Origin: Neoechinorhynchus agilis
Lineage: Eukaryota > Animalia > Acanthocephala
Direction: 5' to 3'
Assembly: GCA_051530055.1 (NCBI GenBank)
Contig: CM121342.1
Coordinates: 2,948,797 to 3,012,796 of the forward strand
DNA length: 64,000 bases
Shown: one piece after another, positions 37,083 through 56,064 of the stretch
How the letters are laid out: each line of letters begins with the position of its first letter
Position numbering within the stretch: the stretch's first letter is position 1
The notes under the pieces: generated by a model
What the model was told of the DNA's origin: nothing
Databases searched by the model: none
Seen by the model: only the letters and a program-made list of their open reading frames with translations
Translations under genes and position numbers: made by a program

Positions 37083-37275
37083 GGTGAAAATACTCCCGGT
37101 AATAGTATATTTGATTTATTGGAGATATTTCGCGAGATAACCTCGCCTCATCAGTCATTGTTAAAGTTTATTATTAAGTGCGAATAAAACACTTTAACAA
37201 TGACTGATGAGGCGAGGTTATCTTGCGAAATATCTCCAATAAATCAAATATACTATTACCGGGAGTATTTTCACC
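37083..37275. ncRNA. 85-bp inverted repeat carrying two opposed hammerhead-like cores (PLE pLTR)
   Basis: Arms 37083-37167 and 37191-37275 with one mismatch. Each holds CTGATGA-G-GCGAG-gttat-CT(C/T)GC-GAAA. Third copy at 44271-44297. Stem I pairing is poor. Confidence 0.6.
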
Positions 37276-39759: not shown

Positions 39760-40099
39760 TACCCTGTAAAATTAAGAAATAAACAATTGCGAATTCTTTA
39801 CGCACCTTTGAGGAATTAGAAGACGAGTACAGGATCATAGACAAGATTTTATCTCCACGATGTGCTGTGACGAATATGAGTAATAATTACCCACATACTT
39901 CATCCACCTCGTACCTTTACTCTACTAAGCATAAATGATATGAGTTTCGTTCGTTCTTCTTTTTTTGCGACAAGTCAATGGGTAAGAAATGAAAAGATGT
40001 TTGATGATTTACACATAAGCCATAGATTTTTTTGCAAAAATGTTATCCATGGATTGTTTTTGATGAGGGCGAAATAAAGAAAATTATTTAATTTTCCTC

Positions 40100-40420
40100 T
40101 TCAGAATCTAGAAAGATAGGATGGTCAATGGTTGATAATTTTGCTCGTTGTTGGCAAACGTATAATGCTTCTCAATTTGTATTGCTTCGACAATTACTCG
40201 CTCATACTGATCATTAGTATGATATAATGTTTTTGCATGATCGAAATCAATCGTATAATTCTCTGTGTGTGTCAAGCTACCGCCCTGCGATTTTCTCTGA
40301 ATCGATGATTGAAATTATTAGTTCAATTGCAAACTTGGGTGCCACAAAATCCGTAAATATGATTCCATTTCATTGAGCAATTTCTTCAACAGAATTTCAA
40401 ATGAATCTTCATAAATCAAA
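40100..40420 (-). mobile_element. Penelope-like GIY-YIG C-terminal remnant
   Basis: Minus-strand YTIDFDHAKTLYHTNDQYERVIVEAIQIEKH matches the PLE H.IDF..A.IL...R...EAI.I tail. Confidence 0.65.
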
Positions 40421-40856
40421 ACTTTAAGTCTTTTAGAACAATCGACTCGCTTATTGATGCCTCCATCGCCTCACTCGTAAATTAGACACTCACATTCGTT
40501 ACTTGAATGATGATTCTTAGGTTTCAACTAACCTTTGACGGCTGCCTATTAAAATTAAGAAATAAAAAACAACGTGTCGCTCTCAGACACATCTATTCGC
40601 GGAATCCCCGTGTTCATGCAATGTTTTAGGATCCTGCAAAGTTTGCAATATGGTACGAATCTTGTTTTTAGGTTACAATGTCATTGGTCATTAATAAAGA
40701 ATATCTCCACAATTTTTTCTTTGATCAAACACCTTTTGCAAGTTGCATATTTCACATCTCTTATACAACATTCCACATGTTTCGAGGGATATCCTCAACT
40801 TCTGAGTATTCTATTGACAAGGGATTGAATCCTGTATATTTTGATCCCTAAACAAG

Positions 40857-41045
40857 AATTGTCTTCTGGCAAACCGGTTATTTTTAATTAAGTGTTAACA
40901 TAATCCCTTATTCGGCTTTTTTTCCTTAAAGGCACACAGCCAACCGATATCTTGCATTAGGGTGTAAGATATCAAGGAAAAAGCAGAGTAAGGGATTATG
41001 TAAAGACCTAATTAAACAATAACCAGCTTGTCAGATGACAAAAAG
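40857..41045. mobile_element. Foldback/MITE with long imperfect inverted arms
   Basis: ctggcaaaccggttatt..cataatcccttattcggcttttttcctt pairs with aaggaaaaagcagagtaagggattatg..aataaccagcttgtcag. The left arm recurs at ~53810-53890. Confidence 0.75.
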
Positions 41046-41169
41046 AGAATTCAATACTTATGCAAGGTTTAAATCTGGCTGGGTTTGTACATTCCGTAAT
41101 TATTTCGAGGTTATCTAGTGAACTTGAGTCATAAATCTGTGTTGTTATTTAGGTCGCCTGTCGAAAGCC

Positions 41170-41600
41170 GATGGAGATCGCCTTAAAGAGAAGAAAGTAT
41201 ATATTTCGACACTGATTGAATCACAATCTAAAATAAAGAGGAATTTGTCACAAACACACGCTAAATGATTGCTTTCGTTTTGACTCGGGAACCCGGGATC
41301 GTCCATCCCGTAAGCGAAGACCAGCCTGGGTGCATTTAGGCCAATTTTCCTTGTTCCATCGTGTTGGCCATTTCAATGTGCGCATATCGACTCTTTTTCA
41401 GAAGTCGATGGGATTTTCTTTGTTCCTTGCAGAGGACGTCGGTCTTGTCGAATCCGATGGAGTGTTTGGTCCGGGCGTAGTATTTGTATTTTCCCCTCAG
41501 CCGTATAGTTAAACAACTCATTGTTTCACCACGCAAAGGCCATCTCGCAGTCGTTGCAAGGCATGCGGTATACTAGATCCGAACTAGCTTTTAGCTGAGG
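41170..41600 (-). mobile_element. Penelope-like GIY-YIG remnant plus terminal region
   Basis: SDLVYRMPCNDCEMAF/GET...IGFDKTDVL (frameshifted); downstream part is duplicated at 23430-23600. Confidence 0.7.
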
Positions 41601-41869
41601 CTTTCGTTTAAAGATACATCCGTTAAATCTGTCCTGCGTTTCAGATTAGAGGCAAAAATTATCAACGAATTTATCAGGGCTTTAAAAGGGGTAACATAAT
41701 ACAACCAAAAGGGACGAAATACCTGAGTCCCGCATAACCGCGTATTGTTCAGGGTATCAAGTGATTCAATCACTTAGACTGATTCTAGATATCTTTTATT
41801 TATATATTTATCCTAAATCGCATACACTCATGGCATCATTGCATGTCTTTTTGGGAGCCTCTCGGCTAC

Positions 41870-42065
41870 TAATTCAGGCACTTGGGAAGCGCTCAGCCGC
41901 ACTCGAAGGGACAGAGCCAACCCTCCTCTGGGGCCAATGGGCGATCTCAAAACTGATCTCTACCCTTCCAGTAACCTCACAACCCCCGTGGAATCCAGCG
42001 ACCATTGGATTTGAACCATCGACATATCGAGCGCATTATGAACGTGCACCACTGGGCCCCAATTC
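41870..42065 (-). mobile_element. tRNA-derived SINE-like element
   Basis: Minus strand: A-box-like ggggcccagtgg (42049-60) and B-box ggttcaaatcc (42007-17) at tRNA spacing, followed by a non-tRNA body. Confidence 0.45.
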
Positions 42066-42671
42066 AAAATATCAGTTAAGAAGGTTAACAAAGATTCGTG
42101 TTCTGATTTAAGCTGCAGATGACGTCATCCAAAAAATTGATTTCTTTAATTTAGCGCTATGTATACGGAAGAAACATAATAATTTATAAAAATGACACTA
42201 GAAATCTGAGCCGTTCGATTTGTTTAATATCGATTGGTCGTGATAGTTCTTATACTTTTACTTGATTATTTTACGCTACTTTTTAGTTGTTGGCTGTATA
42301 CGCTTGTGATCCACATTTAATCGACATTTCGCTTTATTTGCACAGTGCAGACTTAGAAAAGCAACGGTTTTTCTCATTATTTTATCAAATAATGCGAGTG
42401 CAGGAATCAACGCTTAGTTTATCGTTCACAAACGTATTCAATCGTCGATGAAAAAATCGGATTCTAATACGATCATTTCTTGGTTGTTACACTGAAGACG
42501 ACTATTTGAATTTGCGACGACGAATAATTTGGTGGAAAGAGTTATATTTAAGAATTAAATTCGACCAATCACACAATGAAACGTTGAAAGCTTAAAATTA
42601 AAAGGTTTAAAATAAACCAATCGCACGGCAGCATTTTCTAGAAAACGACTTTGGATTCTTAACGAAAAACA

Positions 42672-43422
42672 ATGAAGTTGCGGCAGTTAGAAAGTAAACT
42701 TCAGAATGTTCAATTATTCGACTCGTGTAGCAGTCGTAAATTGGAACAATACTCCACTCCTCCTGATTTGGCAGGTTTTCACCCCTTCACACATAACCAC
42801 ATTCGATGTGATCAATAGCCCGATTGCTGCATTCCATACGGGAGACGGATTTACGAGAATCGGACACTATTGCTGATTTTGGTTGTGGGACTGGAATACT
42901 AGGAATCGGCTTAGGTCTTCTAGGAGCTAAATATATTGTGGGATTCGATATTTGTCCATTCGCGTTGGAACAAGCAAAGACGAACGCCTATAACGTATTG
43001 GACGATCAAGATGTCTGTATCGATTTTGTTCTTTGTGATTTAACTTGCGGATTGCGTGGATCTTTTGACTTAATTGTGATGAATCCTCCTTTCGGCACTT
43101 ACAGCCCTGCAAATGGCGTAGATTTGGCGTTTTTAAAAGAAGCTCTAAGATGTTCTCGGAGTTCCGTTTATTCTTTCCACAAGACCTCGACGAGGAAGGT
43201 GAGATCCTCATCCATTCTTTGTTCAAAAACATTAAAATTTAGTTCGTAGTCCAAAAGGGATACGAGTTCGGCTCCGTGAACGTCGAACCGATAGCTACTC
43301 TGGAGTTCCCAATCGAGAAAATCAACAGATACAAAAAACGACGAGGAAACGAACTACATAATTACCCACTAAAACTCATAGAAGTCGACGTTATCCGATT
43401 CGTAAAGAAAAATGACGATTAA
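42672..43422 (+). CDS. METTL5: rRNA N6-adenosine methyltransferase METTL5-like; three exons (42672-42774, 42819-43198, 43243-43422)
   Basis: MKLRQLESKLQ..LEQYSTPPDLA, IADFGCGTGILGIG, VMNPPFG, HKTSTR, IEVDVIRF. Two 44-nt GT-AG introns give an open frame. Confidence 0.9.
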
Positions 43423-43659
43423 GTCGTGTGGTGAAAGCATTATAACATTCTGTATTTACGTTTGTTCCTTAAAGACAAAATCCCACAGATCAATGGTTCC
43501 CAACGATAATCATGGTATCCACAAAAACCCTCCCCTGATTAGAGTTTTTAGCATGTATTTGAAAATGCTTCCACCAATCAAATATTTTCAACTTTATATT
43601 CAACCGTCGTTATCGGCCGTAAACATTCTAGCTTCTTTTATCTCATCTACTCGATGATC

Positions 43660-44450
43660 CACATTTGACTTCTGCAGAGCCTGTATGCTTCGAAAGAGTG
43701 CATTTCATTGAAGATGACACGAATCAAATGATTTACTCCTTTATGAGTAAGAAGGTTGGAATTCGTCTATACAATACTAAAGGAATCGCTCTCAGAAGCA
43801 CATTCAAGAAGAAGGGTAAAATTGAGCCGACTAATGGGATCAATAGAATGCACTGTGAACAGTTTGATAAAGTCTAAATAGGAGAAACGACACAGGACAT
43901 CAAGAAGAGGGTCGCTCAACATAAGCAAGCCTGCAGTCGATTTGAGCATTCGTCGGCAATCTCTAATCAAGAGACATGTAAGCATCGATCGGATTTTGGT
44001 GGCACCAACTTTATAGAAATAGAGCAAAACTTAAAAAGAAGGCTTCTTTTGGAAGCCTTACACATCGCTGTGTCCAACACAATGGAAGGAAATAAAGCTA
44101 ATTTTAGCTTGAAACTTCCCCCCAGAGACGTGTTAAAAATCAATACTAAAATCATGGAAAAACATAGTATAGCGCAGGGGTTCGAGCTGATAATTGGCCC
44201 GAACTTCGGATCTGGCAATCCCGCGTACTCGAGCTTAAAACCTTAAGGTGAAAAACGTATTTTTAGATGATTGATGAGACGAGGTTATCTCGCGAAATAT
44301 CTCCAATAAATCAAATATGCTATTACCGGGGGAATATGTTCACCAAAATTATAATTTGGCTAACCCGAAGGATTTTTCTATCGATGATATACGTAAATGT
44401 TCTATAAGTTGATAATCCTCTGTGGTAGGACTAAAAACAACCTTTCCGAA
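43660..44450 (+). mobile_element. Penelope-like element 3' part: linker, GIY-YIG, pLTR with hammerhead-like core
   Basis: GINRMHCEQFDKV*IGETTQDIKKRVAQH...RRLLLEALHI; downstream sequence is homologous to 37200-37330. Confidence 0.75.
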
Positions 44451-44786
44451 ACGCTTACCGAAGAGCGACAATGATTTGTATAATCTGATATTGAGGCTAG
44501 AATTCTGATTGGTCCGACATTGAGGGAAATTTTCACAAAACCGGACAGTTAGGAGACATCTAAGTTCTTCGTTTTTCCGATATGAAAGGTATTTCTTTAC
44601 ATTCTTCTGTGCGAATGTAAATGTCTCCACATTGTCTTCTTGGCTTGGCAAACTTCTTCATTTTTACTCGTCTTCATGGTTTAGACTCGCGAATGGGTCA
44701 ACAGTTTGAAGAGTTTTCCCCCTTCAATATTACGGCCCTTATAAAGAAAATTGTGTCTCTTTTAGACTCCTCAATACCATCTAAGA

Positions 44787-46663
44787 ATGGATCCGGATGT
44801 TCTAGCTGAGGATTTGACGCAAAAACTCGTCCTAAGCTCAGAAGGCGCTCCATTGGTCTACGATTTGAACACAATCTCATCAGCTGTCAAGTTTGACACG
44901 ATTTATTCTCTTATAAGGGACATATCGACTCTTTCGACGATAGATGTCGGGAAACCAATCTTAACCCGCGCTCGGATTCACACGAGTCGTCTTAAAGGAA
45001 AACAATGCTTCTTAGTTCTTCGAGTAAAATTCGCAACTTGTCAAGCTGTTTGCAGTGTCCAACCGGAAAAGATATCAAAGCAATGTCTTCAGTTCCTCGC
45101 TAAAGTCCCTCGAGAAAGTGTAGTGGATGTTTATGCCACAGTACAAGCTACTCCCTTTAAAGTCAGCGGTTGCTCTCTTCAAGAAATTGAACTCCATATA
45201 AAACGTGTTCTCGTGATCAGTAGATCGGATTCTATCCTTCCTATGCAAGTGGACGATGCAATGAGACCTCTTGCTGCTGATCAGACGCTGGCTCACGTCA
45301 ATCAGGATACCCGTTTGGACAATAGGATCATCGATTTGCGTACGCCTGCTAATCAAGCCATTTATGCCATCGAAGCTGGAATTGTAAGGCTGTTCAGAGA
45401 ACAATTTGATCTTTACGGCTTCACCGAGATATTCACGCCAAAGATCATCGGAGCAGCCAGCGAAGGCGGCGCTAATGTGTTCCGCGTTTCGTACTTCAAA
45501 ACCGATGCTTTTCTTGCTCAGAGTCCTCAACTCTACAAACAAATGGCAATCGCGGGCGACTTTGAACGAGTGTATACAATTGGAGCCGTATTCCGTGCTG
45601 AAGAATCGTTCACTCACCGACACTTGACTGAATTCACTGGGGTTGATTGTGAAATGGCGTTCATGTATCATTATCATGAAGCTTTGCAAGTTTATGGAAA
45701 GATGTTCCTTGGACTCCTTTCAGCAATTGAACGCAAATATCAAAAGGAATTACAGATAATCTCGCAACAGTATCCATTTGAACCTTTTAGTCGGTTGTTT
45801 GGCCGTACTGATTTTTTGCATCGATTTGGCTTATTGTATGCTACAAAGCATTTCGACAAACGATCTTAAGTCCACGTTTTTCATGTAGATTTCTCGACTA
45901 ATGTTGCCTTATATTTCCGATTACTGCTTTTTGTTACAAAATTAAATTTTATATGGGAGTTACATACCTCCCAAAAAAATCATTTGAGTTTTTGCTATTA
46001 AATTTTTTATGTAAAATAATGATTTACGAACATGGTGAATTAAAGAGATAAAAAAGACCATAGGACCCGGGTTTATACTTGCGAAATACGTTAACTTTTA
46101 TGCCTATGGTGATTTTAAATCAATTAAATACTTTCTAACACATGCGTTAAACAACCAATGAACTGTCTAAGGAAAGTGATGGACCTCTTATAATTTGTTA
46201 TGACGAGGGAATAAGAATGTTGAAGGAAGACGGTGTGGATGTTGAATTCGGCGACGATCTCTCATGCACAAATGAAAAACACTTAGGAAATTTGATAAAG
46301 AAAAAATTCAACACCGATTTCTATATCCTCGACAAGTATCCACTTTCACTTCGTCCATTCTACACAATGCCCGATCCGAACGATGACCGACTCTCTAACT
46401 CATATGATATGTTCATACGCGGCGAAGAAATCGTCTCAGGTGCACAGCGTATTCATGATCCACAATTACTCCGAAAACGAATCGAAGCGAACGGAATCGA
46501 CCCAGAGAAATTGCGCGATTATATTGATGCATTTAGGTATGGATGTAGTCCACATGCCGGGGTCGGAATCGGCCTGGAACGAGTTGTCATGCTTTATCTC
46601 GGACTCGGAAATATTCGGTATACGTCGCTCTTCCCGCGTGATCCAAAGAGACTTCATCCTTGA
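44787..46663 (+). CDS. DARS1: Cytosolic aspartyl-tRNA synthetase; two coding blocks (44787-45789, 46170-46663), 498 aa when joined
   Basis: [98 protein letters not shown]. Confidence 0.97.
45790..46167. mobile_element. TA-flanked 378-bp insertion in AspRS coding sequence
   Basis: TA at 45788-89 and 46168-69; weak terminal inverted repeat (9/13). Removing it with one TA gives in-frame [14 protein letters not shown]. Confidence 0.6.
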
Positions 46664-46699
46664 ATAAACGGCTTAGAATAATACATAGAATCTTGTCTT

Positions 46700-49600
46700 T
46701 CTTCGGTAAGTCCAAAAGCAATCGACATTTTTTAATTTTTTTGAAGCTCGGCTACTTTCTGGTTTTATTTTCTAACGACCTATTTGTGTAGGATGCTGTT
46801 AAAATTTACTTTTGATTAACATTTGATCGACTGAAGTTAAACTCAATGATTTCGTTCGATGATGACAAACACAGACCTGTACTGAACATGATTTCTTCAG
46901 TGAGTCTGAGAACCGTTCATCAAAATTGTCCGGCATTCGTAGCGGCTAATCTCAACAAAAATTAGTCTGTGTTATTATCCGGACTATAAAAAGTTATTGC
47001 TTCTTAATCTCGTCTTTTTATGCAAGTCCAAAAGCAATCGACATTTTTTAACTTTTTGAAGCTCGGCTACTTTCTGGTTTTATTTTCTAACGACCTATTC
47101 GTGTAGGATGCTGTTTTACTTTTGATTAACATTTGATCGACTGAGGTTAAACTCAATTATTTCGTTCGATGATGACAAACACAGACCTGTACTGAACATG
47201 ATTTCTTCAGTGAGTCTGAGAACCGTTCATCAAAATTGTCCGGCATTCGTAGCGGCTAATCTCAACCAAAAGTTAGTCTGTGTTATTATCCGGACTATAA
47301 AAAGTTATTGCTTCTCAATCTTGTCTTTCTTCGGCAAGTCCAAAAGCAATCGACATTTTTTAACTTTTTTGAAGCTCGGCTACTTTCTGGTTTTATTTTC
47401 TAACGACCTATTCGTGTAGGATGCTGTTAAAATTTACTTTTGATTAACATTTGATCGACTGAGGTTAAACTCAATTATTTCGTTCGATGATGACAAACAC
47501 AGACCTGTACTGAACATGATTTCTTCAGTGAGTCTGAGAACCGTTCATCAAAATTGTCCGGCATTCGTAGCGGCTAATCTCAACCAAAAGTTAGTCTGTG
47601 TTATTATCCGGACTATAAAAAGTTATTGCTTCTTAATCTCGTCTTTTTTATGACAAGTCCAAAAGCAATCGACATTTTTTAATTTTTTTGAAGCTCGGCT
47701 ACTTTCTAGTTTTATTTTCTAACGACCTATTCGTGTAGGATGCTGTTAAAATTTACTTTTGATTAACATTTGATCGACTGAGGTTAAACTCAATGATTTC
47801 GTTCGATGATGACAAACACAGACCTGTACTGAACATGATTTCTTCAGTGAGTCTGAGAACCGTTCATCAAAATTGTCCGGCATTCGTAGCGGCTAATCTC
47901 AACCAAAAGTTAGTCTGTGTTATTATCCGGACTATAAAAAGTTATTGCTTCTCAATCTTGTCTTTCTTCGGCAAGTCCAAAAGCAATCGACATTTTTTAA
48001 TTTTTGAAGCTCGGCTACTTTCTGGTTTTATTTTCTAACGACCTATTCGTGTAGGATGCTGTTAAAATTTACTTTTGATTAACATTTGATCGACTGAGGT
48101 TAAACTCAATTATTTCGTTCGATGATGACAAACACAGACCTGTACTGAACATGATTTCTTCAGTGAGTCTGAGAACCGTTCATCAAAATTGTCCGGCATT
48201 CGTAGCGGCTAATCTCAACCAAAAGTTAGTCTGTGTTATTATCCGGACTATAAAAAGTTATTGCTTCTCAATCTTGTCTTTCTTCGGCAAGTCCAAAAGC
48301 AATCGACATTTTTTAATCTTTTTTGAAGCTCGGCTACTTTCTAGTTTTATTTTCTAACGACCTATTCGTGTAGGATGCTGTTAAAATTTACTTTTGATTA
48401 ACATTTGATCGACTGAGGTTAAACTCAATTATTTCGTTCGATGATGACAAACACAGACCTGTACTGAACATGATTTCTTCAGTGAGTCTGAGAACCGTTC
48501 ATCAAAATTGTCCGGCATTCGTAGCGGCTAATCTCAACCAAAAGTTAGTCTGTGTTATTATCCGGACTATAAAAAGTTATTGCTTCTCAATCTTGTCTTT
48601 CTTCGGCAAGTCCAAAAGCAATCGACATTTTTTAATTTTTTTGAAGCTCGGCTACTTTCTAGTTTTATTTTCTAACGACCTATTCGTGTAGGATGCTGTT
48701 AAAATTTACTTTTGATTAACATTTGATCGACTGAGGTTAAACTCAATTATTTCGTTCGATGGTGACAAACACAGACCTGTACTGAACATGATTTCTTCAG
48801 TGAGTCTGAGAACCGTTCATCAAAATTGTCCGGCATTCGTAGCGGCTAATCTCAACCAAAAGTTAGTCTGTGTTATTATCCGGACTATAAAAAGTTATTG
48901 CTTCTCAATCTTGTCTTTCTTCGGCAAGTCCAAAAGCAATCGACATTTTTTAATTTTTTTGAAGCTCGGCTACTTTCTGGTTTTATTTTCTAACGACCTA
49001 TTCGTGTAGGATGCTGTTAAAATTTACTTTTGATTAACATTTGATCGACTGAGGTTAAACTCAATTATTTCGTTCGATGATGACAAACACAGACCTGTAC
49101 TGAACATGATTTCTTCAGTGAGTCTGAGAACCGTTCATCAAAATTGTCCGGCATTCGTAGCGGCTAATCTCAACCAAAAGTTAGTCTGTGCACAGAACCG
49201 TTCATCTTCCATTAGCGGCTAACTCAACAAAATGTTATTATCCGGACTATAAAAAGTTATTGCTTCTTAATCTCGTCTTTTTTATGACAAGTCCAAAAGC
49301 AATCGACATTTTTTAATTTTTTTGAAGCTCGGCTACTTTCTAGTTTTATTTTCTAACGACCTATTCGTGTAGGATGCTGTTAAAATTTACTTTTGATTAA
49401 CATTTGATCGACTGAGGTTAAACTCAATGATTTCGTTCGATGATGACAAACACAGACCTGCTGAACATGATTTCTTCAGTGAGTCTGAGAACCGTTCATC
49501 AAAATTGTCCGGCATTCGTAGCGGCTAATCCAACAAAAAGAGCTGTGTTATATCCGACTATAAAAAGTTATTATCTCTTTTTTAGCCAAAGCAATGACTT

Positions 49601-50796
49601 TTTAATTTTTTTGAAGCTCGGCTACTTTCTAGTTTTATTTTCTAACGACCTATTCGTGTAGGATGCTGTTAAAATTTACTTTTGATTAACATTTGATCGA
49701 CTGAGGTTAAACTCAATTATTTCGTTCGATGGTGACAAACACAGACCTGTACTGAACATGATTTCTTCAGTGAGTCTGAGAACCGTTCATCAAAATTGTC
49801 CGGCATTCGTAGCGGCTAATCTCAACCAAAAAGTTAGTCTGTGTTATTATCCGGACTATAAAAAGTTATTGCTTCTCAATCTTGTCTTTCTTCGGCAAGT
49901 CCAAAAGCAATCGACATTTTTTAACTTTTTTGAAGCTCGGCTACTTTCGGTTTTATTTTCTAACGACCTATTCGTGTAGGATGCTGTTAAAATTTACTTT
50001 TGATTAACATTTGATCGACTGAGGTTAAACTCAATGATTTCGTTCGATGATGACAAACACAGACCTGTACTGAACATGATTTCTTCAGTGAGTCTGAGAA
50101 CCGTTCATCAAAATTGTCCGGCATTCGTAGCGGCTAATCTCAACAAAAAGTTAGTCTGTGTTATTATCCGGACTATAAAAAGTTATTGCTTCTTAATCTT
50201 GTCTTTTTTCGGCAAGTCCAAAAGCAATCGACATTTTTTAACTTTTTTGAAGCTCGGCTACTTTCTAGTTTTATTTTCTAACGACCTATTCGTGTAGGAT
50301 GCTGAAAATTATTTGATTCATTTGAGATGAGTAAACTCAATTATTTCGTTCGATGTGAAACACAGACCTGTACTGAACATGATTTCTTCAGTGAGTCTGA
50401 GAACCGTTCATCAAAATTGTCCGGCATTCGTAGCGGCTAATCTCAACCAAAAGTTAGTCTGTGTTATTATCCGGACTATAAAAAGTTATTGCTTCTTAAT
50501 CTCGTCTTTTTTATGACAAGTCCAAAGCAATCGACATTTTTTAATTTTTTTGAAGCTTGGCTACTTTCTAGTTTTATTTTCTAACGACCTATTCGTGTAG
50601 GATGCTGTTAAAATTTACTTTTGATTAACATTTGATCGACTGAGGTTAAACTCAATGATTTCGTTCGATGATGACAAACACAGACCTGTACTGAACATGA
50701 TTTCTTCAGTGAGTCTGTGAACCGTTCATCAAAATTGTCCGGCATTCGTAGCGGCTAATCTCAACCAAAAGTTAGTCTGTGTTATTATCCGGACTA
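46700..50796 (+). repeat. ~318-bp tandem array, 13 units, each with a C/D snoRNA
   Basis: snoRNA starts at 46854, 47164, 47482, 47801, 48117, 48436, 48754, 49072, 49435, 49724, 50042, 50348 and 50663. Confidence 0.97.
46854..46913 (+). ncRNA. SNORD25: Box C/D snoRNA, SNORD25/U25 (snR56)-like; first of 13 copies
   Basis: GTTC-G-ATGATGA (C box)...CACAGACCTGTA-CTGA (D')...ATGATT (C')...CTGA (D)-GAAC. 4-bp terminal stem. The guide is complementary to conserved 18S ACAGGUCUGUG, and CACAGACCUGUACUGA is the guide plus D' of human U25 as I recall it. Confidence 0.88.
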
Positions 50797-51004
50797 GGAA
50801 AATTTGTCGGTTGTTTTCTTTTTTATGTATTGTCTTATGAAAAAGCTTTTCAGTGGTTAAAAAAGTGGAAAAATCGGAACGGGCAATGTCTTTGATTTGC
50901 GTTGTGTTATTCGCTTTTTGATTTTTCGATTTAAGAAATGCTTTCACGTTTTGTGTTCCCATTTTCATTCCCTATCGCACTTCTTTTGCAAAGATAGCTC
51001 GTTT

Positions 51005-54000
51005 TTACTCATTAGTAGAACTTCTTGAAACACTTTTCGAGACATTGGTACTAATGCTCGCAATCATTGAAGAAATTGTTTCTTGTGAGTAGGATTTTCT
51101 AAGTGAGTGATGAATTTTCCTTAACGCCCTACTTGGCAAAAATTCAGTGTCGTTATTGGCTCGCCTGGTGATTGATTTGATTTCCGCTGCCGCAATGGAG
51201 GAAAACCGATCTTCTTTTTGATTTGTATACTCGACCAATGCTTGGTCCATGTTGTTTTCTGCGTACGTTTTCAAGAACTTGAGAGCACTTCTTTCAACTG
51301 CAGTGGGTACGCGATCGGTTGAAGAGCAGTCCATTCTGTCGACCATTTCAAGGTGTATCCGAGCAAGGTCTTGCCTATTTCCGACCTTCTCGAGAACTCC
51401 AGCGAGTTTTGCTAAAATCACTCGTTTATCGGACTCATCTATCACAGATGAACGATGCCGGAGTTAGAGTTTAGCTAAAAGCGATCTTTAAGCTTTGAAG
51501 CTATTACGCATTTTGTGATTTTCTTTATATAGAATTCCCCGACCCAAGGCTTCCGACATCGATCACCGGTCGGTAACATATAACACTTCCAATATGCATG
51601 ACGAGCCATATCGTACCTTCCACTGGCGACACAGATATCTCCTATGGCATTTAAGAACCGATGATCATCGGTTTTGATAGTGTGAGCATTAATATAATAA
51701 GGTAGACAATATTCATTGATTTTCATAAGTTCAAAGACATTGGCTAATCCGTACCATGCACGATAGTCAGATTTGTTTATCCGGATTGCACGCCAGTAGC
51801 AGAATAGGGCTGCTGTGAACTGGCGAAGTTCAATGAGCTCATGTCCACTCAATGTCCAGGCCCGAGAATAGAACGGGTTTACGTCTAGTGCCCGGTGGAA
51901 ATTGATGAAGGCGTTTTTGTTTTTCTTTAGAACACTGTAATAGTTACCGAGGACCACACAAGTTATGTGCCGAAGGGCGTCGGTTCTTCGACATTGCTGA
52001 GTCAATAAGGCTAGATTACTGCAGTCTTTAACAATGTAGGCCGAATATGCAAATGGGTTTTTTGAAAGTGATCTAAACGTTCCCCTAAAAAGCGCTCAAT
52101 ACACCGGAATTCGGAATGGCCTTCAAAATTTTATAAAATCTTTTCGCGTGCCCTGAATACGGTGAACGTCCCAAACATTTTAGAGCCAAGCAACCTGTTC
52201 AGGTTGGATGGTCGTCGTCCGGATGGCATCACCGTATTCCCGTGGCGAGAAGGCAAATGTTTTCTCTGGGAAGAGGTTTGTGATGCAATCCCCAGGCGAA
52301 GCGGCTACTGCCGCGGAGGACCGAAAAGTGGCGAAATATAGAGAATTAAGTAGGTCTCACGTTTTTGTACCCTTTGGAGTGGAGACTCTTGGTGCGCTCG
52401 ATAGCTCGGCACTTAGATTTACAAAGGAGTTATCGAGTAGACTCCAGGCTAAGACAGGAAATACAAGAGCTGGCGCCTTCCTACGCCAAAACATTGTGTG
52501 GTCGCGATCTAAAGAGGAAACGCAGCGAGTGTGGTCGCGACCACTGAGGGGAGCTCTTCTTAGTGGACGGTGGTGATTGTTGAAACGTTTTGTGGTTGTG
52601 TGCGTAAATGAAAGAGATGCTTTCAAAAAAATGGAAATTCAAGAAAAAGCTTCAATCACGGACAGGGTAAAATCCAGAAACATGCTATGAATAAAATATA
52701 TATTGTTATTAATTTATAAAAGCTCCGATGGGAATAATATTCAATTGCCTCGAAATCACTGATTTTCTGATAAAAATAGTTGACTGCCCTGGTTTCCTTT
52801 GTTATTGCGACTAACCAATGTCCAACCTTTGTTAAACATTCTGCTTGGTCCAACGGCACGTTTACAAAACGTAGAGTGACGAATTGAATTACTAATGAGA
52901 CCTTTTGGTGGTTAAGATCAAGTACAAAAACGGGCGACTGAACTTGTACAGAAGGCTTGGTAGTCCACATTTAGGTTTTAGAATCATTTCTTTGCGTTTT
53001 AGATTGTATTTAACTCTAATTTTCTTATTTCTCTAAGCAATTTTCTGAATTGGTAAAAATTCCTTTTTTTATCGAATGAGACGAGTAAACTTGTTTTCCG
53101 AACTGCAAATCCTTAGGAGACCATCATGAAACTCAAATGCATATCCGACTTAAAGGATATGGGAATATTGATCAGCTATTTCAATATCGTGTGGTTTTAA
53201 CATTGCATAGAACGTCTTCGCCTGATCGTGATGACCGCGTTCAACGGACCAAATAACTCGTAGTCGGCTCACAAAAGTGGACCTGTAGAAAATAAAAGAA
53301 GAATCAAACAGTGTCCGCACGACGGATGGATCGGTAGTGCGTCCGAGTCTTGTTAGGGCATCAATAGAATAAAGGTCGCAAGCCCAATGAGAGCCGAGAT
53401 TAAATCCGCCAAGATCACTTACTTTTTGAATGAGATCTCTTAATTTAATCCAAGCATCAAACATGAGTGGCATTTGTCGAATAGCCGAGCACAGGTGTTC
53501 AATGGCTAGGCTATCTTTTGCGAGGAGTTTATAGGCCAGTCCAAACAGAAGACTAAAGTAGGCGTTTTCACAATAAGGATCCTTGCTTAGCTCGTCCACA
53601 AAAGCGTTCAATTTATGCTGAAGAATGTTTGATTCATCCGATTCTCGAACGTACTCAACCCCATAGTTCCGTTCAATGTCCAGAAATGCTGCATAATTAC
53701 GAAGGAACCGGCAGATACTGGATTCGCAATCACGTAAAACAGCGGTGCCCAATCTTTCCTCTTTTCGTGGGGACTGCTTTCCACATTTAGATAAATTCTC
53801 TTATGTCTTCTGACAAGCCGGTTATATTAACTTAATGTTTGTATAATCCCTTATTCGGCTTTTTTCCTCCAAAAGCACACAGCCAACCGATATCCTGAAA
53901 CAGTCTAAGTGATTGGATCACTTCTCAGGAGATATCTGAGGATCCGGAGGGATCCGTTCAAACTCATAACCGCGAATGGTTCAGCAGGGCATTGAGTGTT

Positions 54001-54819
54001 TCAATCACTTAGACTGATTCAAGATATCGGTCGACTGTGTGCCATTATAGGAAACACTTAATTTAGATAAATCGCGTGCGGAATAAAACGTTTGCAAAGA
54101 TTTCAAAAGCAAATAAATGTAGAGATGAAACTTGTTAATCTACAGCGTCAGAAAGCAAAGAAACTCAGTATTCTATGAGTTGTTAATGTTTAGTCTGAGG
54201 CTGGTGTTTGTTGAAATACAGCACAGAAGGTGAGCATACGAAGGTCCATTAGGAAAGCGATAGGTCAAAAGGTGAATAATAAAAGTTGTGTCCGGATTAT
54301 TGAAAATATTGGCAAAAATTTAAGGCTTGTTTTTTCTGGAGTTTTATTCGCGCGAATAAAAAAGGCGTACAAGATTGTGCTTTCGAAATATCGGATTTTA
54401 AAATCATTTTCATTTCTTTGCCAGAAAGCAACCAATATGAACAATTCAATCTTCTAGCAACACTTAGGGGCACCTTAGAGGGCGCCGGATGTGACCCCCG
54501 GACCATAGGTTGGGCACTGCTGACGTAAAACATGGCCGACTCTCTGAAACTCTTGGTTCTTCAAAAGTAGTTTGGCGAACCTGTATAGATTGTATTCTGA
54601 CATTGTATCTAGCATTATTGACGATTGGGCCGTCCATTGAAGTCGGTGTTCATCGCCAATTAAATAACAAGTTTCGTATAAATCCGTACAGAATTCTTTA
54701 CTGTCGAGCAAATAGTAGCCATCTAAGATCTCTATAGCTTCCAAGAGTTCATTGCGAGGGTCGAATTTGTCCTCCTTATTTGTGGCCATTACAGGCTCAG
54801 TTGCGCAGGATTCGATCAT
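51005..54819 (-). CDS. CDC23: Anaphase-promoting complex subunit 8; four coding blocks (54819-54523, 53731-53151, 52036-51574, 51439-51005), 591 aa when joined
   Basis: EYNLYRFAKLL..EFQR, CVVLGNYYS, RAWTLSGHELIEL, DYRAWYGLANVFELMK, YCLPYY. Block lengths sum to 1776 nt, in frame. Confidence 0.92.
51442..51573. mobile_element. TA-flanked 132-bp inverted-repeat insertion (CDC23 junction 3)
   Basis: TA at 51440-41 and 51574-75; arms acagatgaacgatgccgga / tccgacatcgatcaccggt (15/19). Confidence 0.7.
52150..52570 (+). mobile_element. RLE-type non-LTR retrotransposon endonuclease remnant nested in CDC23 insertion 2
   Basis: LEPSNLFRLDGRRPDGITVFPWREG and AEDRKVAKYRELSRSHVFVPFGVETLGA...RAGAFLRQ. Confidence 0.85.
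52700..52970 (-). mobile_element. Second RLE remnant, opposite orientation, nested in CDC23 insertion 2
   Basis: Reverse complement of 52790-52860 is near-identical to 38350-38430. Confidence 0.6.
53740..54522. mobile_element. Non-autonomous hAT-type element inserted in CDC23 coding sequence
   Basis: 8-bp TSD acgtaaaa at 53732-39 and 54523-30; TIRs cagcggtgcccaatct / aggttgggcactgctg (14/16), with CAG ends typical of hAT. Confidence 0.9.
53805..54065. mobile_element. MITE nested within the hAT element
   Basis: gcacacagccaaccgatatcctgaaacagtctaagtgattg pairs with caatcacttagactgattcaagatatcggtcgactgtgtgc. Shares an arm with 40860-40950 and 41760-41795. Confidence 0.7.
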
Positions 54820-56064
54820 GAATTGATATTTGGAAGAAGTTTTATGTCTAAAAAGATGTAACCAGCGTTTTTAATTAAAGAAGATTTATCCGGAAAGGGG
54901 ATATGAGGCGATATTTAGATCAGATGGAGATATTGTGTGGATTATTGCGTTACAAGTCCAACTATTTTTGCATCTTAGAAATTAAGGGTAGCTTCTGCTG
55001 GGCATTGAGAAATACAAAGAAGAGATTCAGGCGTAGATCGGACAGTCGACCTCTTCAATAAAAGATTAAAGTCCAAATGCTCTTGATCACCTTGTCGTCC
55101 AAGTGAAGCTTTAATGACCGTTGAGCCCGAACTTTGGCTGCTTTGAGCCAATTTTTCATCTTATTCAAGTCGTCATTGATTGTAAGGTTCGCCGTAAAAG
55201 TGTAACCCAAAGGATTAAGCTTTCTATAGAGTGGTGGGCAGGAAAAGGGGTCGAACCGAGGACTTTGATTTCAAAATGAATTTTTTTTTCTAATTTAGAG
55301 AAAAAACCATTTGAGAAAGTGTTCGCCGTAAATAGCCGAAAATTGAATAGTTTTTTAATTGACAAAATGCGACCAGGTTTTTAATTTCGCGGACAAAAAA
55401 GTGTAAAAATGGTGCTAAAATCAATGAAAACCATCTCAGAAGTGTGCATTAATTTTTAAGGAAATCATGAATTAATTTTTGAAAAAAAGAGTAATGCGAA
55501 TTTAATAAACGCTTCAGATTGACAGATAAAAGTAGAACTGCGATTACGGATAAGTAGAAAAATAATACAATAAATTTGGGGTTCTAAAAAAACTTTATTA
55601 AATTCCAAAAACCTTAAAGAATCACGTAAAAAACGAATAAACAGTTCTTTAAATAAAAAATTAAGCCAACTTCCATCAACAACTTTATGTATCTCAAAAA
55701 GAATCCCTGTAAAACTCTATGAAAACAACTGTAAAAACGAGAATTCGACCTTTAGAAAAAATGAAATATTTGGGTGGACGTGCAATTCTTCCCGGAATCC
55801 TGGACGATCGAAATGCGACAATGTCCTCATTCATGAAATAGTTGATCCTTGAAGAATTACTAGCGATGTTTTGACTCACAAATAGGTTTGTACTATTTCA
55901 GTACTGAATTTTTAGTCCTAATCCGAGTTTTGCGGGATTATCCGCGAGTTGAATTTACCTGATCGCTTGTCGAGTGTTCAACACGCTACTTCCCGAAAGC
56001 TCCCTAGATCTAATTCTTCCATTCATTTCTTCTCCGATCATTGATCTTTTATTGACGCCAATGA

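Follow-up and report, generated by a model that had tools for sequence, protein, structure and literature searches.

In the animals studied so far, the snoRNAs that guide rRNA modification are mostly single- or few-copy genes residing within the introns of host genes. The mammalian SNORD115/116 and SNORD113/114 are orphan snoRNAs, each carried in the intron of a repeated non-coding exon-intron unit within an imprinted domain. Polycistronic snoRNA clusters, where a single precursor covers several snoRNAs together with their spacers, exist in plants, yeasts and Euglenozoa. Tandemly repeated snoRNA clusters also occur in Euglena and trypanosomatids. In trypanosomatids, the rRNA-guide snoRNA genes are clustered and polycistronically transcribed (PMC6562600). 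The W-elements of Schistosoma mansoni are satellite-like monomers predicted to hold SNORD59 and other snoRNAs, a prediction which its authors describe as unproven (PMC8490949). A tandem array of one rRNA-guide snoRNA, which the first-pass annotation of the present DNA had regarded as a rarity, is indeed unusual for an animal, but the clustered guides of trypanosomatids (PMC6562600) and the predicted SNORD59 satellites of S. mansoni (PMC8490949) mean that the original claim has to be qualified.

The analysed window is a 64,000-nt stretch of DNA from the acanthocephalan Neoechinorhynchus agilis (contig CM121342.1, positions 2,948,797 to 3,012,796 of the forward strand). Tandem Repeats Finder delimited one tandem array in it, at 46689-50796 on the plus strand, with a period of 318 bp, 12.9 units and 87% matches. 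The array contains 13 assembled copies of a box C/D snoRNA, 60 nt each when intact, and it occupies the gap between the convergent AspRS and CDC23 genes, both of whose mRNAs end outside it. The features of the locus are as follows.

46159-46683, plus strand: last exon and 3' end of an AspRS-type gene (Pfam tRNA-synt_2; RNA contigs)
46689-50796, plus strand: array, beginning about where the upstream gene has its poly(A) site (Tandem Repeats Finder, unit alignments, DNA read depth)
46854-46913, plus strand: snoRNA copy 1, intact, 60 nt (pattern search, copy alignment)
47164-47223, plus strand: snoRNA copy 2, intact (pattern search, cmscan, copy alignment)
47238-47355, plus strand: two-hairpin H/ACA-like element, 118 nt, given as an example (fold z-scores)
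47356-47481, plus strand: unstructured T-rich part of the spacer (fold z = -0.88; list of T runs)
47482-47541, plus strand: snoRNA copy 3, intact, the reference copy (reads mapped here carry a C-box A>G at 47490)
47801-47860, plus strand: snoRNA copy 4, intact
48117-48176, plus strand: snoRNA copy 5, intact
48436-48495, plus strand: snoRNA copy 6, intact
48754-48813, plus strand: snoRNA copy 7, C box AUGGUGA (variant backed by Illumina reads)
49072-49131, plus strand: snoRNA copy 8, intact
49435-49492, plus strand: snoRNA copy 9, TA missing directly before the D' box (DNA depth here only about 3)
49724-49783, plus strand: snoRNA copy 10, C box AUGGUGA
50042-50101, plus strand: snoRNA copy 11, intact (reads mapped here carry A>G at 50050)
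50348-50404, plus strand: snoRNA copy 12, C box changed to GAUGUGA by a 3-nt loss
50663-50722, plus strand: snoRNA copy 13, D box CUGU
50991-51441, minus strand: last exon and 3' end of the CDC23/APC8 gene, converging on the array (RNA contigs; Pfam ANAPC8 and TPR on upstream exons)

A pattern composed of the C box, the guide and the D' box gave 12 matches at no more than three mismatches, against none in 100 shuffles, and the one copy outside these matches is that with the 2-nt guide deletion. Eight of the 13 copies are complete and identical, five are altered, and the D' guide is perfect in 12. Among nine clean units, the identity ranged from 94 to 99.7% with a mean of 97.3% in the unit alignment. 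No further copy of the 318-bp unit was detected elsewhere in the window by blastn. The repeat analysis, the pattern search and the exact copy coordinates together bear out the 13-copy tandem amplification of an approximately 318-bp unit that had been annotated initially, and all five altered copies were found exactly at the starts given for them (48754, 49435, 49724, 50348 and 50663). As for an independent assembly of the array, an ORF inside it retrieved no record, and an AspRS exon query returned only the window's own assembly.

Independent Illumina whole-genome reads (run X8) were mapped over the array and its flanks. The DNA depth of the array was about 1.5 times that of the flanks (roughly 24 versus 15). 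Therefore, the array itself is real and the sampled DNA contains about 20 copies, so that the read-depth check suggested for the true copy number gives about 20 in the Illumina sample instead of the 13 assembled. The same reads carried the C-box A>G change in 18 of 32 cases at 47490 and in 12 of 37 at 50050. The presence of ATGGTGA in independent reads rules out a read error as the source of this variant, an explanation that the first-pass annotation had allowed for some of the altered copies. The aberrant stretches of units 9, 10 and 12 are poorly supported: their depth is only 2-6, under the single-copy level, and they may be polishing errors of the hybrid long-read assembly or rare alleles. 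In the case of copy 12, the low depth (about 2.4) belongs to the spacer just upstream (bin 50162-50355), and the copy lies almost wholly in the next, deep bin.

Box C/D snoRNAs are typically stable 60-100-nt RNAs in complex with fibrillarin, Nop56, Nop58 and Snu13, and a short terminal stem joins their 5' C box (RUGAUGA) to their 3' D box (CUGA). The intact copies share a terminal stem GUUC/GAAC, a C box AUGAUGA, a D' box CUGA, a degenerate C' box UGAUUU and a D box CUGA, the stem, C and D boxes being as given in the eight identical copies. The anatomy described at first reading (stem and boxes C, D', C' and D) was thereby confirmed. The target search used six Rfam-verified eukaryotic SSU rRNAs, none of them from N. 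agilis, and a guide of at least 10 nt with the target paired to the fifth nucleotide upstream of D or D' as the criterion. On all six, the D' guide pairs over 11 bp with the 18S sequence ACAGGUCUGUG, and guide position 5 falls on its first G, at SSU positions 1423-1434 in the four of ordinary length. When aligned to snR56 by cmscan, the same 16 nt (guide plus D' box) were matched in the same register. Published tables treat yeast Gm1428/snR56, human Gm1490/U25, Arabidopsis Gm1431/snoR19 and Dictyostelium Gm1506 as one site (PMC8817022; PMC3511168). The assignment of the target to the U25/snR56 site by the D'+5 rule was hence supported from three sides, namely the six rRNAs, the snR56 register and the site tables. 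The target G is the Gm1428/Gm1490 equivalent on heterologous 18S genes, and its methylation is predicted.

Rfam gave a divided answer. At the curated (gathering) thresholds the whole window yielded no match; sub-threshold scores reached 26.6 bits for snR56 (gathering 54) and 18 for snoU25 (gathering 50). The best sub-threshold families were snR56, DdR1, snoR25 and snoU25, and the copies match only these functional equivalents. The kinship with SNORD25 therefore appears at the E-value level and not at any gathering score. The first-pass annotation had named the lack of an Rfam hit as counter-evidence; because no model reaches its gathering score, this is formally the outcome at the curated threshold, and it is not the outcome at the E-value level. 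Outside the array, the E-value mode found nothing snoRNA-like in the whole window, the sole match being a palindromic MIR5380-like sequence at 37110-37248.

For the second guide, CUUCAGUGAGU, which adjoins the D box, no conserved target was found in the six rDNAs. Starting at its position 4, this guide can pair outward with CACUGAAGGAA, an 18S sequence that lies some 40 nt downstream from the first target and occurs in one of the six rDNAs. Among the variants seen at the D-guide site, the extended form GCTACACTGAAGGAATCAGCGTGT is the most frequent (9 of 111 loci). Because the duplex begins directly beside the target and extends into the C' box, we treat this site as a lead only. The candidate 18S site for the D guide reads CACUGAAGG.

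We consider it probable that the array represents multi-copy genes for the acanthocephalan counterpart of U25/snR56, a predicted guide for methylation of the G in 18S ACAGGUCUGUG. On the strongest competing view, a snoRNA gene would have seeded a satellite that is now decaying; the repeats would be largely silent or useless and a working guide, if any, would be encoded elsewhere. Box or guide defects in five of 13 copies fit such decay, and so does the C-box A>G present in a third to half of the reads at two positions. This change in AUGGUGA hits what we take, from general knowledge of box C/D k-turns, to be the second sheared G.A pair of the k-turn; copy 7 is therefore probably disabled. The TA deletion of copy 9 would move the target by 2 nt. 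The snoRNA is also as variable as the spacer: polymorphic columns common to units numbered 1 of 60 in the snoRNA and 12 of 258 in the spacer (Fisher p = 0.47). With no deficit of shared polymorphism in the snoRNA, selection on it relative to the spacer cannot be demonstrated from within the array, and none was detectable there. On the other hand, eight copies are complete and identical, the guide is intact in all but one copy, and some of the defects fall in stretches with poor read support. The merely trace RNA coverage in three poly(A) libraries fits a silent satellite, but snoRNAs are not expected to show up in such libraries. Taken together, we regard a decaying satellite as unlikely.

The RNA data bear on how the array might be expressed. 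The RNA libraries found were poly(A)-captured only. Upstream of the array, the AspRS stop codon lies at 46661-46663 and an AATAAA at 46663-46668, and the mRNA coverage ends at 46669-46683; the depth of the AspRS mRNA contig is 400-1100 and falls to zero at 46683. On the other side, the CDC23 RNA contigs begin at 50991-50998. Within the array, low-depth RNA contigs occurred in three runs (47205-47424, 47386-47620 and 47756-47972), colinear with the DNA and passing through snoRNA and spacer. Their depth of 2.5 indicates trace, unspliced material, and trace genomic DNA from 13-20 copies could give the same. No splice joint inside the array was present in any poly(A) RNA run at this trace coverage. 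Two RNA-confirmed introns here, 45788-46158 and 51442-51575, are not GT-AG, so canonical splice motifs are weak guides in this genome. The 11-mer GTCGGTTGTTT is found both where the AspRS intron starts (45790) and just beyond the array (50806), and the two sites share no similarity outside it. A tRNA scan of 40000-56000 for tRNA-snoRNA dicistrons found none, and no promoter was identified.

A further candidate is a repeated host gene of the SNORD116 type, in which each unit would comprise a short non-coding exon and a snoRNA-bearing intron, with release by splicing and debranching. Suitable motifs can be picked out: a donor-like GTAAGT in unit 1 and GCAAGT in most other units, CTAAC followed about 85 nt downstream by TAG, and, 3' of the snoRNA, CTAAT and then TTAG. 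However, in four units the donor is replaced by ACAAGT or TGCAAG, removal of the first candidate intron would keep the snoRNA within an exon, the three array contigs are colinear with the DNA and, at trace coverage in poly(A)-selected libraries, no run contains an array joint; such canonical motifs also carry little weight where both confirmed introns are not GT-AG. We therefore judge this arrangement very improbable. Least probable is AspRS read-through, in which uncapped RNA would be trimmed 5' to 3' after poly(A)-site cleavage and assembled snoRNPs would survive, for although the array starts about 6-20 nt past the end of coverage of a highly expressed gene on the same strand, RNA depth in the poly(A) libraries is zero directly past the mRNA end, and read-through would need to last 4 kb against a converging gene.

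The spacer provided a further structured element. The minimum-free-energy fold of 47238-47355 consists of two hairpins, and the order is hairpin 1 (base GUCCGG/CCGGAC), hinge AUAAAA, hairpin 2 (base AUUGCUU/AAGCAAU), CG, ACA and UUU. The fold z-score was -4.35 on the plus strand and -2.39 on the minus strand, and that of a variant unit was -4.62. The element is found once per unit, in 12 complete copies, and displays the hairpin-hinge-hairpin-tail arrangement with an ANANNA hinge and an ACA after hairpin 2. As read from the fold, the distance from the pocket top to the H/ACA box is 14 nt in the 3' hairpin and about 18 nt in the 5' hairpin, against a norm of 14-16 nt. In Rfam, no described H/ACA family corresponded to it, the sole match being SNORA32 at 15.7 bits versus a threshold of 60 (E = 3). 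Nor were rRNA pocket targets in the six heterologous rDNAs clearly above those of shuffled pockets: there were 5 matches versus a shuffle mean of 2.55 (maximum 10) and 9 versus 9.45, and none was conserved across loci. On its predicted fold, the element may be a candidate H/ACA snoRNA. A TATA box, CTATAAAAAG at 47295, is an alternative reading of its hinge. Every run of at least four T in the unit sits in the following T-rich part, from right after ACAUUU; this part is a candidate terminator and/or promoter region.

If the array does encode the U25/snR56 counterpart, the D' guide would bring fibrillarin to the conserved 18S G (human G1490, yeast G1428) for 2'-O-methylation. The array would be transcribed by itself, with no spliced host gene, either by separate transcription of each 318-bp unit or as one long non-polyadenylated precursor. 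Exonucleases would then trim the transcript down to the snoRNP and so free the 60-nt RNAs, perhaps following cleavage within the structured spacer, and if the spacer encodes a second, H/ACA-type snoRNA, the unit would be dicistronic. The high copy number may serve dosage. Unequal crossing-over could homogenise the units and also let defective copies such as those with AUGGUGA persist. A bolder view, which we hold doubtful, is that much of the rRNA-modification guide set in this animal has moved out of introns into autonomous satellite-like arrays, here with dicistronic C/D plus H/ACA units ending in a T run, alongside TA-bounded non-canonical introns that replace GT-AG, so that an animal would produce its snoRNAs in a protist-like way.

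The RNA itself is of an ancient and well-known type; the satellite-like row of copies is an unusual layout for an animal. A deeply conserved guide in an intergenic tandem array, with no sign of a host, would point to a different route of snoRNA expression and dosing in this lineage. With this array, the distinction between satellite DNA and working gene families becomes less sharp. Because repeat masking would hide such genes, snoRNA inventories would wrongly list them as lost. With the k-turn-breaking AUGGUGA so common here, the array also lends itself to studying what load of defective members a multi-copy RNA gene family can bear.

Compared with SNORD25 (U25), snR56, AtsnoR19 and Dictyostelium DdR1-CD1 (Rfam clan CL00049), the N. 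agilis RNA is likewise a box C/D snoRNA and has the same D' guide core CACAGACCUGU and the same D' spacing, and so it would aim at the same 18S G. It differs in scoring under every family's gathering threshold, in its shorter predicted length of 60 nt and in a D guide that lacks a conserved target in the six rDNAs; human U25, moreover, lies in a host-gene intron, whereas the N. agilis gene forms 13-20 tandem copies in an intergenic gap. In SNORD115/116 and SNORD113/114, as in the array, a single C/D snoRNA is repeated head to tail in tens of copies that vary among themselves. Unlike the SNORD115/116 type, the N. agilis D' guide has a classic 18S target and is thus not an orphan, no splicing was seen at trace poly(A) coverage, and the 318-bp unit is far shorter. 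The Euglenozoan clusters share the placement of rRNA-guide genes outside introns in repeated clusters; they mix C/D and H/ACA snoRNAs processed from long precursors, whereas one C/D gene is certain here and the H/ACA-type element is a candidate, and they belong to trans-splicing protists whose repeat units usually contain several different snoRNAs. The W-elements of S. mansoni are sex-chromosome satellites with 709-bp monomers from a different phylum (PMC8490949), yet there too a parasitic worm has a tandem repeat in which the monomer is predicted to contain a C/D snoRNA of the rRNA-guide type.

Tandem Repeats Finder reported a single array at 46689-50796, with a period of 318, 12.9 copies and 87% matches. 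The pattern of C box, guide and D' box occurred 12 times at ≤3 mismatches, versus 0 occurrences in 100 dinucleotide-preserving shuffles, and a looser pattern search recovered the thirteenth copy of the set, which lacks two guide bases. The tandem snoRNA array claimed by the first-pass annotation was thus confirmed. The 60-mer is identical in 8 of the 13 copies, e.g. 47482-47541 (+), and the starts of the five altered copies agree with the positions previously given:

Altered copies of the snoRNA (+ strand)
Start 48754: C box ATGGTGA
Start 49724: C box ATGGTGA
Start 49435: TA lost before D'
Start 50348: C box shortened
Start 50663: D box CTGT

Pairwise identity among the nine clean units (snoRNA plus spacer) was 94-99.7% (mean 97.3%), and the spacers come in two haplotypes, mixed along its length.

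The N. agilis genome was assembled from pooled worms by a hybrid Nanopore/HiFi/Illumina approach to 46.2 Mb, with an N50 of 16.4 Mb and three major scaffolds, and is accompanied by poly(A)-captured RNA-seq (PMC12690905). Illumina WGS reads from a separate project under the same species label covered the flanks ~15-fold and the array ~24-fold on average. The array was therefore confirmed in independent reads, but with roughly 20 units in that sample versus 13 assembled. At 47490, 18 of 32 reads carried the C-box A>G change, as did 12 of 37 at 50050, so ATGGTGA is a real and common variant. It costs the box C/D k-turn its second sheared G.A pair and should impair Snu13 binding. The odd stretches of units 9, 10 and 12 reached an Illumina depth of only 2-6, under the single-copy level. 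The irregularities there include a garbled insertion of 44 nt, a number of small deletions, the loss within the guide and, shortly before copy 12 (start 50348), a divergent stretch of spacer; unpolished long-read sequence or rare alleles probably account for them. The earlier suspicion of read errors hence fails for ATGGTGA but may apply to the poorly covered stretches. We consider it unlikely that the array is a decaying satellite without working copies. What the data do show is a real array of a complete C/D snoRNA gene with a conserved guide.

Intact copies are closed by a terminal stem of 4 bp (GUUC/GAAC). Within it, in 5' to 3' order, come the C box AUGAUGA, 16 nt that end in CACAGACCUGUA, the D' box CUGA, a degenerate C' box (UGAUUU), a second guide region of 11 nt and the D box CUGA. 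Rfam at curated thresholds made no calls in the entire window. In E-value mode, box C/D snoRNA families made up almost all matches to each copy, and the top four scores belonged to families guiding the same modification, namely snR56 (26.6 bits, gathering score 54), DdR1 (25.8 bits), snoR25 (24.9 bits) and snoU25 (18 bits). The guide and D' box equal the snR56 consensus over 16 nt, in register in the Rfam alignment.

A scan of metagenome contigs with a 25-mer spanning the 18S site found it in more than 120, and six of these carry complete SSU, 5.8S and LSU genes according to Rfam, their 18S being heterologous to N. agilis. In all six, ACAGGTCTGTG forms an 11-bp pairing with the guide, whose fifth position upstream of D' faces the first G of ACAGGTCTGTG. 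Where the 18S has ordinary length (four of the six), the targeted G lies at SSU position 1423-1434. Equivalent sites are yeast Gm1428/snR56, human Gm1490/U25, Arabidopsis Gm1431/AtsnoR19 and Dictyostelium Gm1506/CD1, and U25 and snR56, in clan CL00049, count among the guides that go back to the last eukaryotic common ancestor (PMC8817022, PMC3511168). Because of the guide register, the target G on six heterologous contigs and the published site equivalence, the U25/snR56-type assignment proposed in the first-pass annotation is supported as a function, while formal Rfam membership stays sub-threshold; the snoRNA is a predicted guide and would be an additional member of this functional family. 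The second (D) guide, CUUCAGUGAGU (e.g. 47531-47541, one per copy), could base-pair with 18S CACUGAAGGAA from position 4 outward, ~40 nt 3' of the first target; of the variants observed among 111 metagenomic 18S loci, heterologous to N. agilis, the extended 18S form GCTACACTGAAGGAATCAGCGTGT is the commonest.

The spacer also contains a structured element. After each snoRNA come 14 nt and then a 118-nt two-hairpin segment (e.g. 47238-47355), which folds at -31.5 kcal/mol on the + strand (z = -4.35; - strand z = -2.39). The variant haplotype retains the fold (z = -4.62), and the rest of the spacer (123 nt) lacks structure (z = -0.88). AUAAAA lies between the hairpins, and CG, ACA and UUU follow the second, in which the top of the internal loop is 14 nt from ACA; every run of at least 4 T in the unit sits directly after ACAUUU. 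This hairpin-AUAAAA-hairpin-ACA arrangement matches the box H/ACA layout. However, the 5' hairpin distance is ~18 nt versus the expected 14-16, Rfam H/ACA families gave no match to the element, and in six heterologous rDNAs the rRNA matches of its pockets did not clearly exceed those of shuffled controls. Also against this reading, variation within the unit peaks in the second hairpin, at its pocket and upper stem. Each unit's hinge also fits a good TATA box, CTATAAAAAG, which precedes the next snoRNA by 186 nt. We rate an H/ACA snoRNA as a possible reading of the element, though less likely than not; alternatively, the second hairpin can be extended into a longer 9-bp-based stem that could be a precursor cleavage site.

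Each of the three poly(A)-captured RNA runs yielded one ~220-nt contig within the array (47205-47424, 47386-47620 and 47756-47972; depth 2.5), colinear with the DNA and crossing snoRNA and spacer. With 13-20 copies, genomic carry-over of ~0.15-fold would suffice to produce this signal, so these contigs do not establish array transcription. A 60-nt snoRNA is not detectable in a poly(A) library. No splice joint was seen inside the array in the three runs. A SNORD116-like exon-intron host gene is very unlikely: the unit does offer GTAAGT/GCAAGT, CTAAC-TAG and CTAAT-TTAG motifs, but the donor is absent from four units, no junctions turned up in array RNA and both RNA-confirmed nearby introns are not GT-AG.

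The array is flanked by two convergent genes, a class II aspartyl-type tRNA synthetase (AspRS) and CDC23/APC8, both assigned by Pfam:

46661-46663, + strand: AspRS stop codon, overlapping AATAAA at 46663-46668
46669-46683, + strand: ends of synthetase exon RNA contigs from three runs (depth 340-1100)
50991-50998, - strand: beginning of CDC23 mRNA contigs

The array therefore belongs to neither mRNA and occupies nearly the entire gap between the convergent 3' ends. Processing of the snoRNAs from read-through of the synthetase gene, which is strongly expressed and whose poly(A) site adjoins the array, is most improbable.

Spacing here is extremely tight: coverage ends within 20 nt of AATAAA, and the array starts ~6-20 nt past the AspRS mRNA end. 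The introns at 45788-46158 (AspRS, +) and 51442-51575 (CDC23, -) are removed in RNA contigs. The former reads TA..AA at its ends, with inverted ends GGTTGTTT/AAACAACC, and was spliced at depth 450-870 versus unspliced at 14-19 in two of three runs, with no unspliced form in the third; the latter is flanked by TA on each side. The 11-mer GTCGGTTGTTT occurs at 45790, at the start of the AspRS intron, and at 50806, 10 nt beyond the array end; the surroundings share no similarity beyond it, and the repeat may be chance or a leftover end of one type of mobile insert present at both places. At 37110-37248, both strands of a palindromic element match the MIR5380 model, with 92.6 and 87.9 bits under a gathering score of 150; the element is probably a foldback or MITE-like repeat, not a microRNA.

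We propose that the array is transcribed independently of its neighbours, either from a promoter in each unit or as one long non-polyadenylated precursor. snoRNP assembly on each copy would shield the 60-mer from the exonucleases that degrade the spacers. Copy number may supply dosage, and unequal exchange would homogenise units yet tolerate defective ones.

A search of a literature collection found no paper treating snoRNAs of acanthocephalans or rotifers; the word snoRNA came up once in each of two papers, both times on another subject. Tandemly repeated snoRNA clusters are known in Euglena. Mammalian SNORD115/116 arrays have a similar layout, but theirs are orphan guides in spliced host introns. 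Trypanosomatid snoRNA genes are likewise clustered, and are polycistronically transcribed (PMC6562600). Schistosoma mansoni W-element satellites also share the layout, with SNORD59 content predicted rather than demonstrated (PMC8490949). The array itself is confirmed and its guide interpretation supported, with family scores below threshold in Rfam; it appears to be a known RNA, of predicted guide function, in a layout unusual for an animal.
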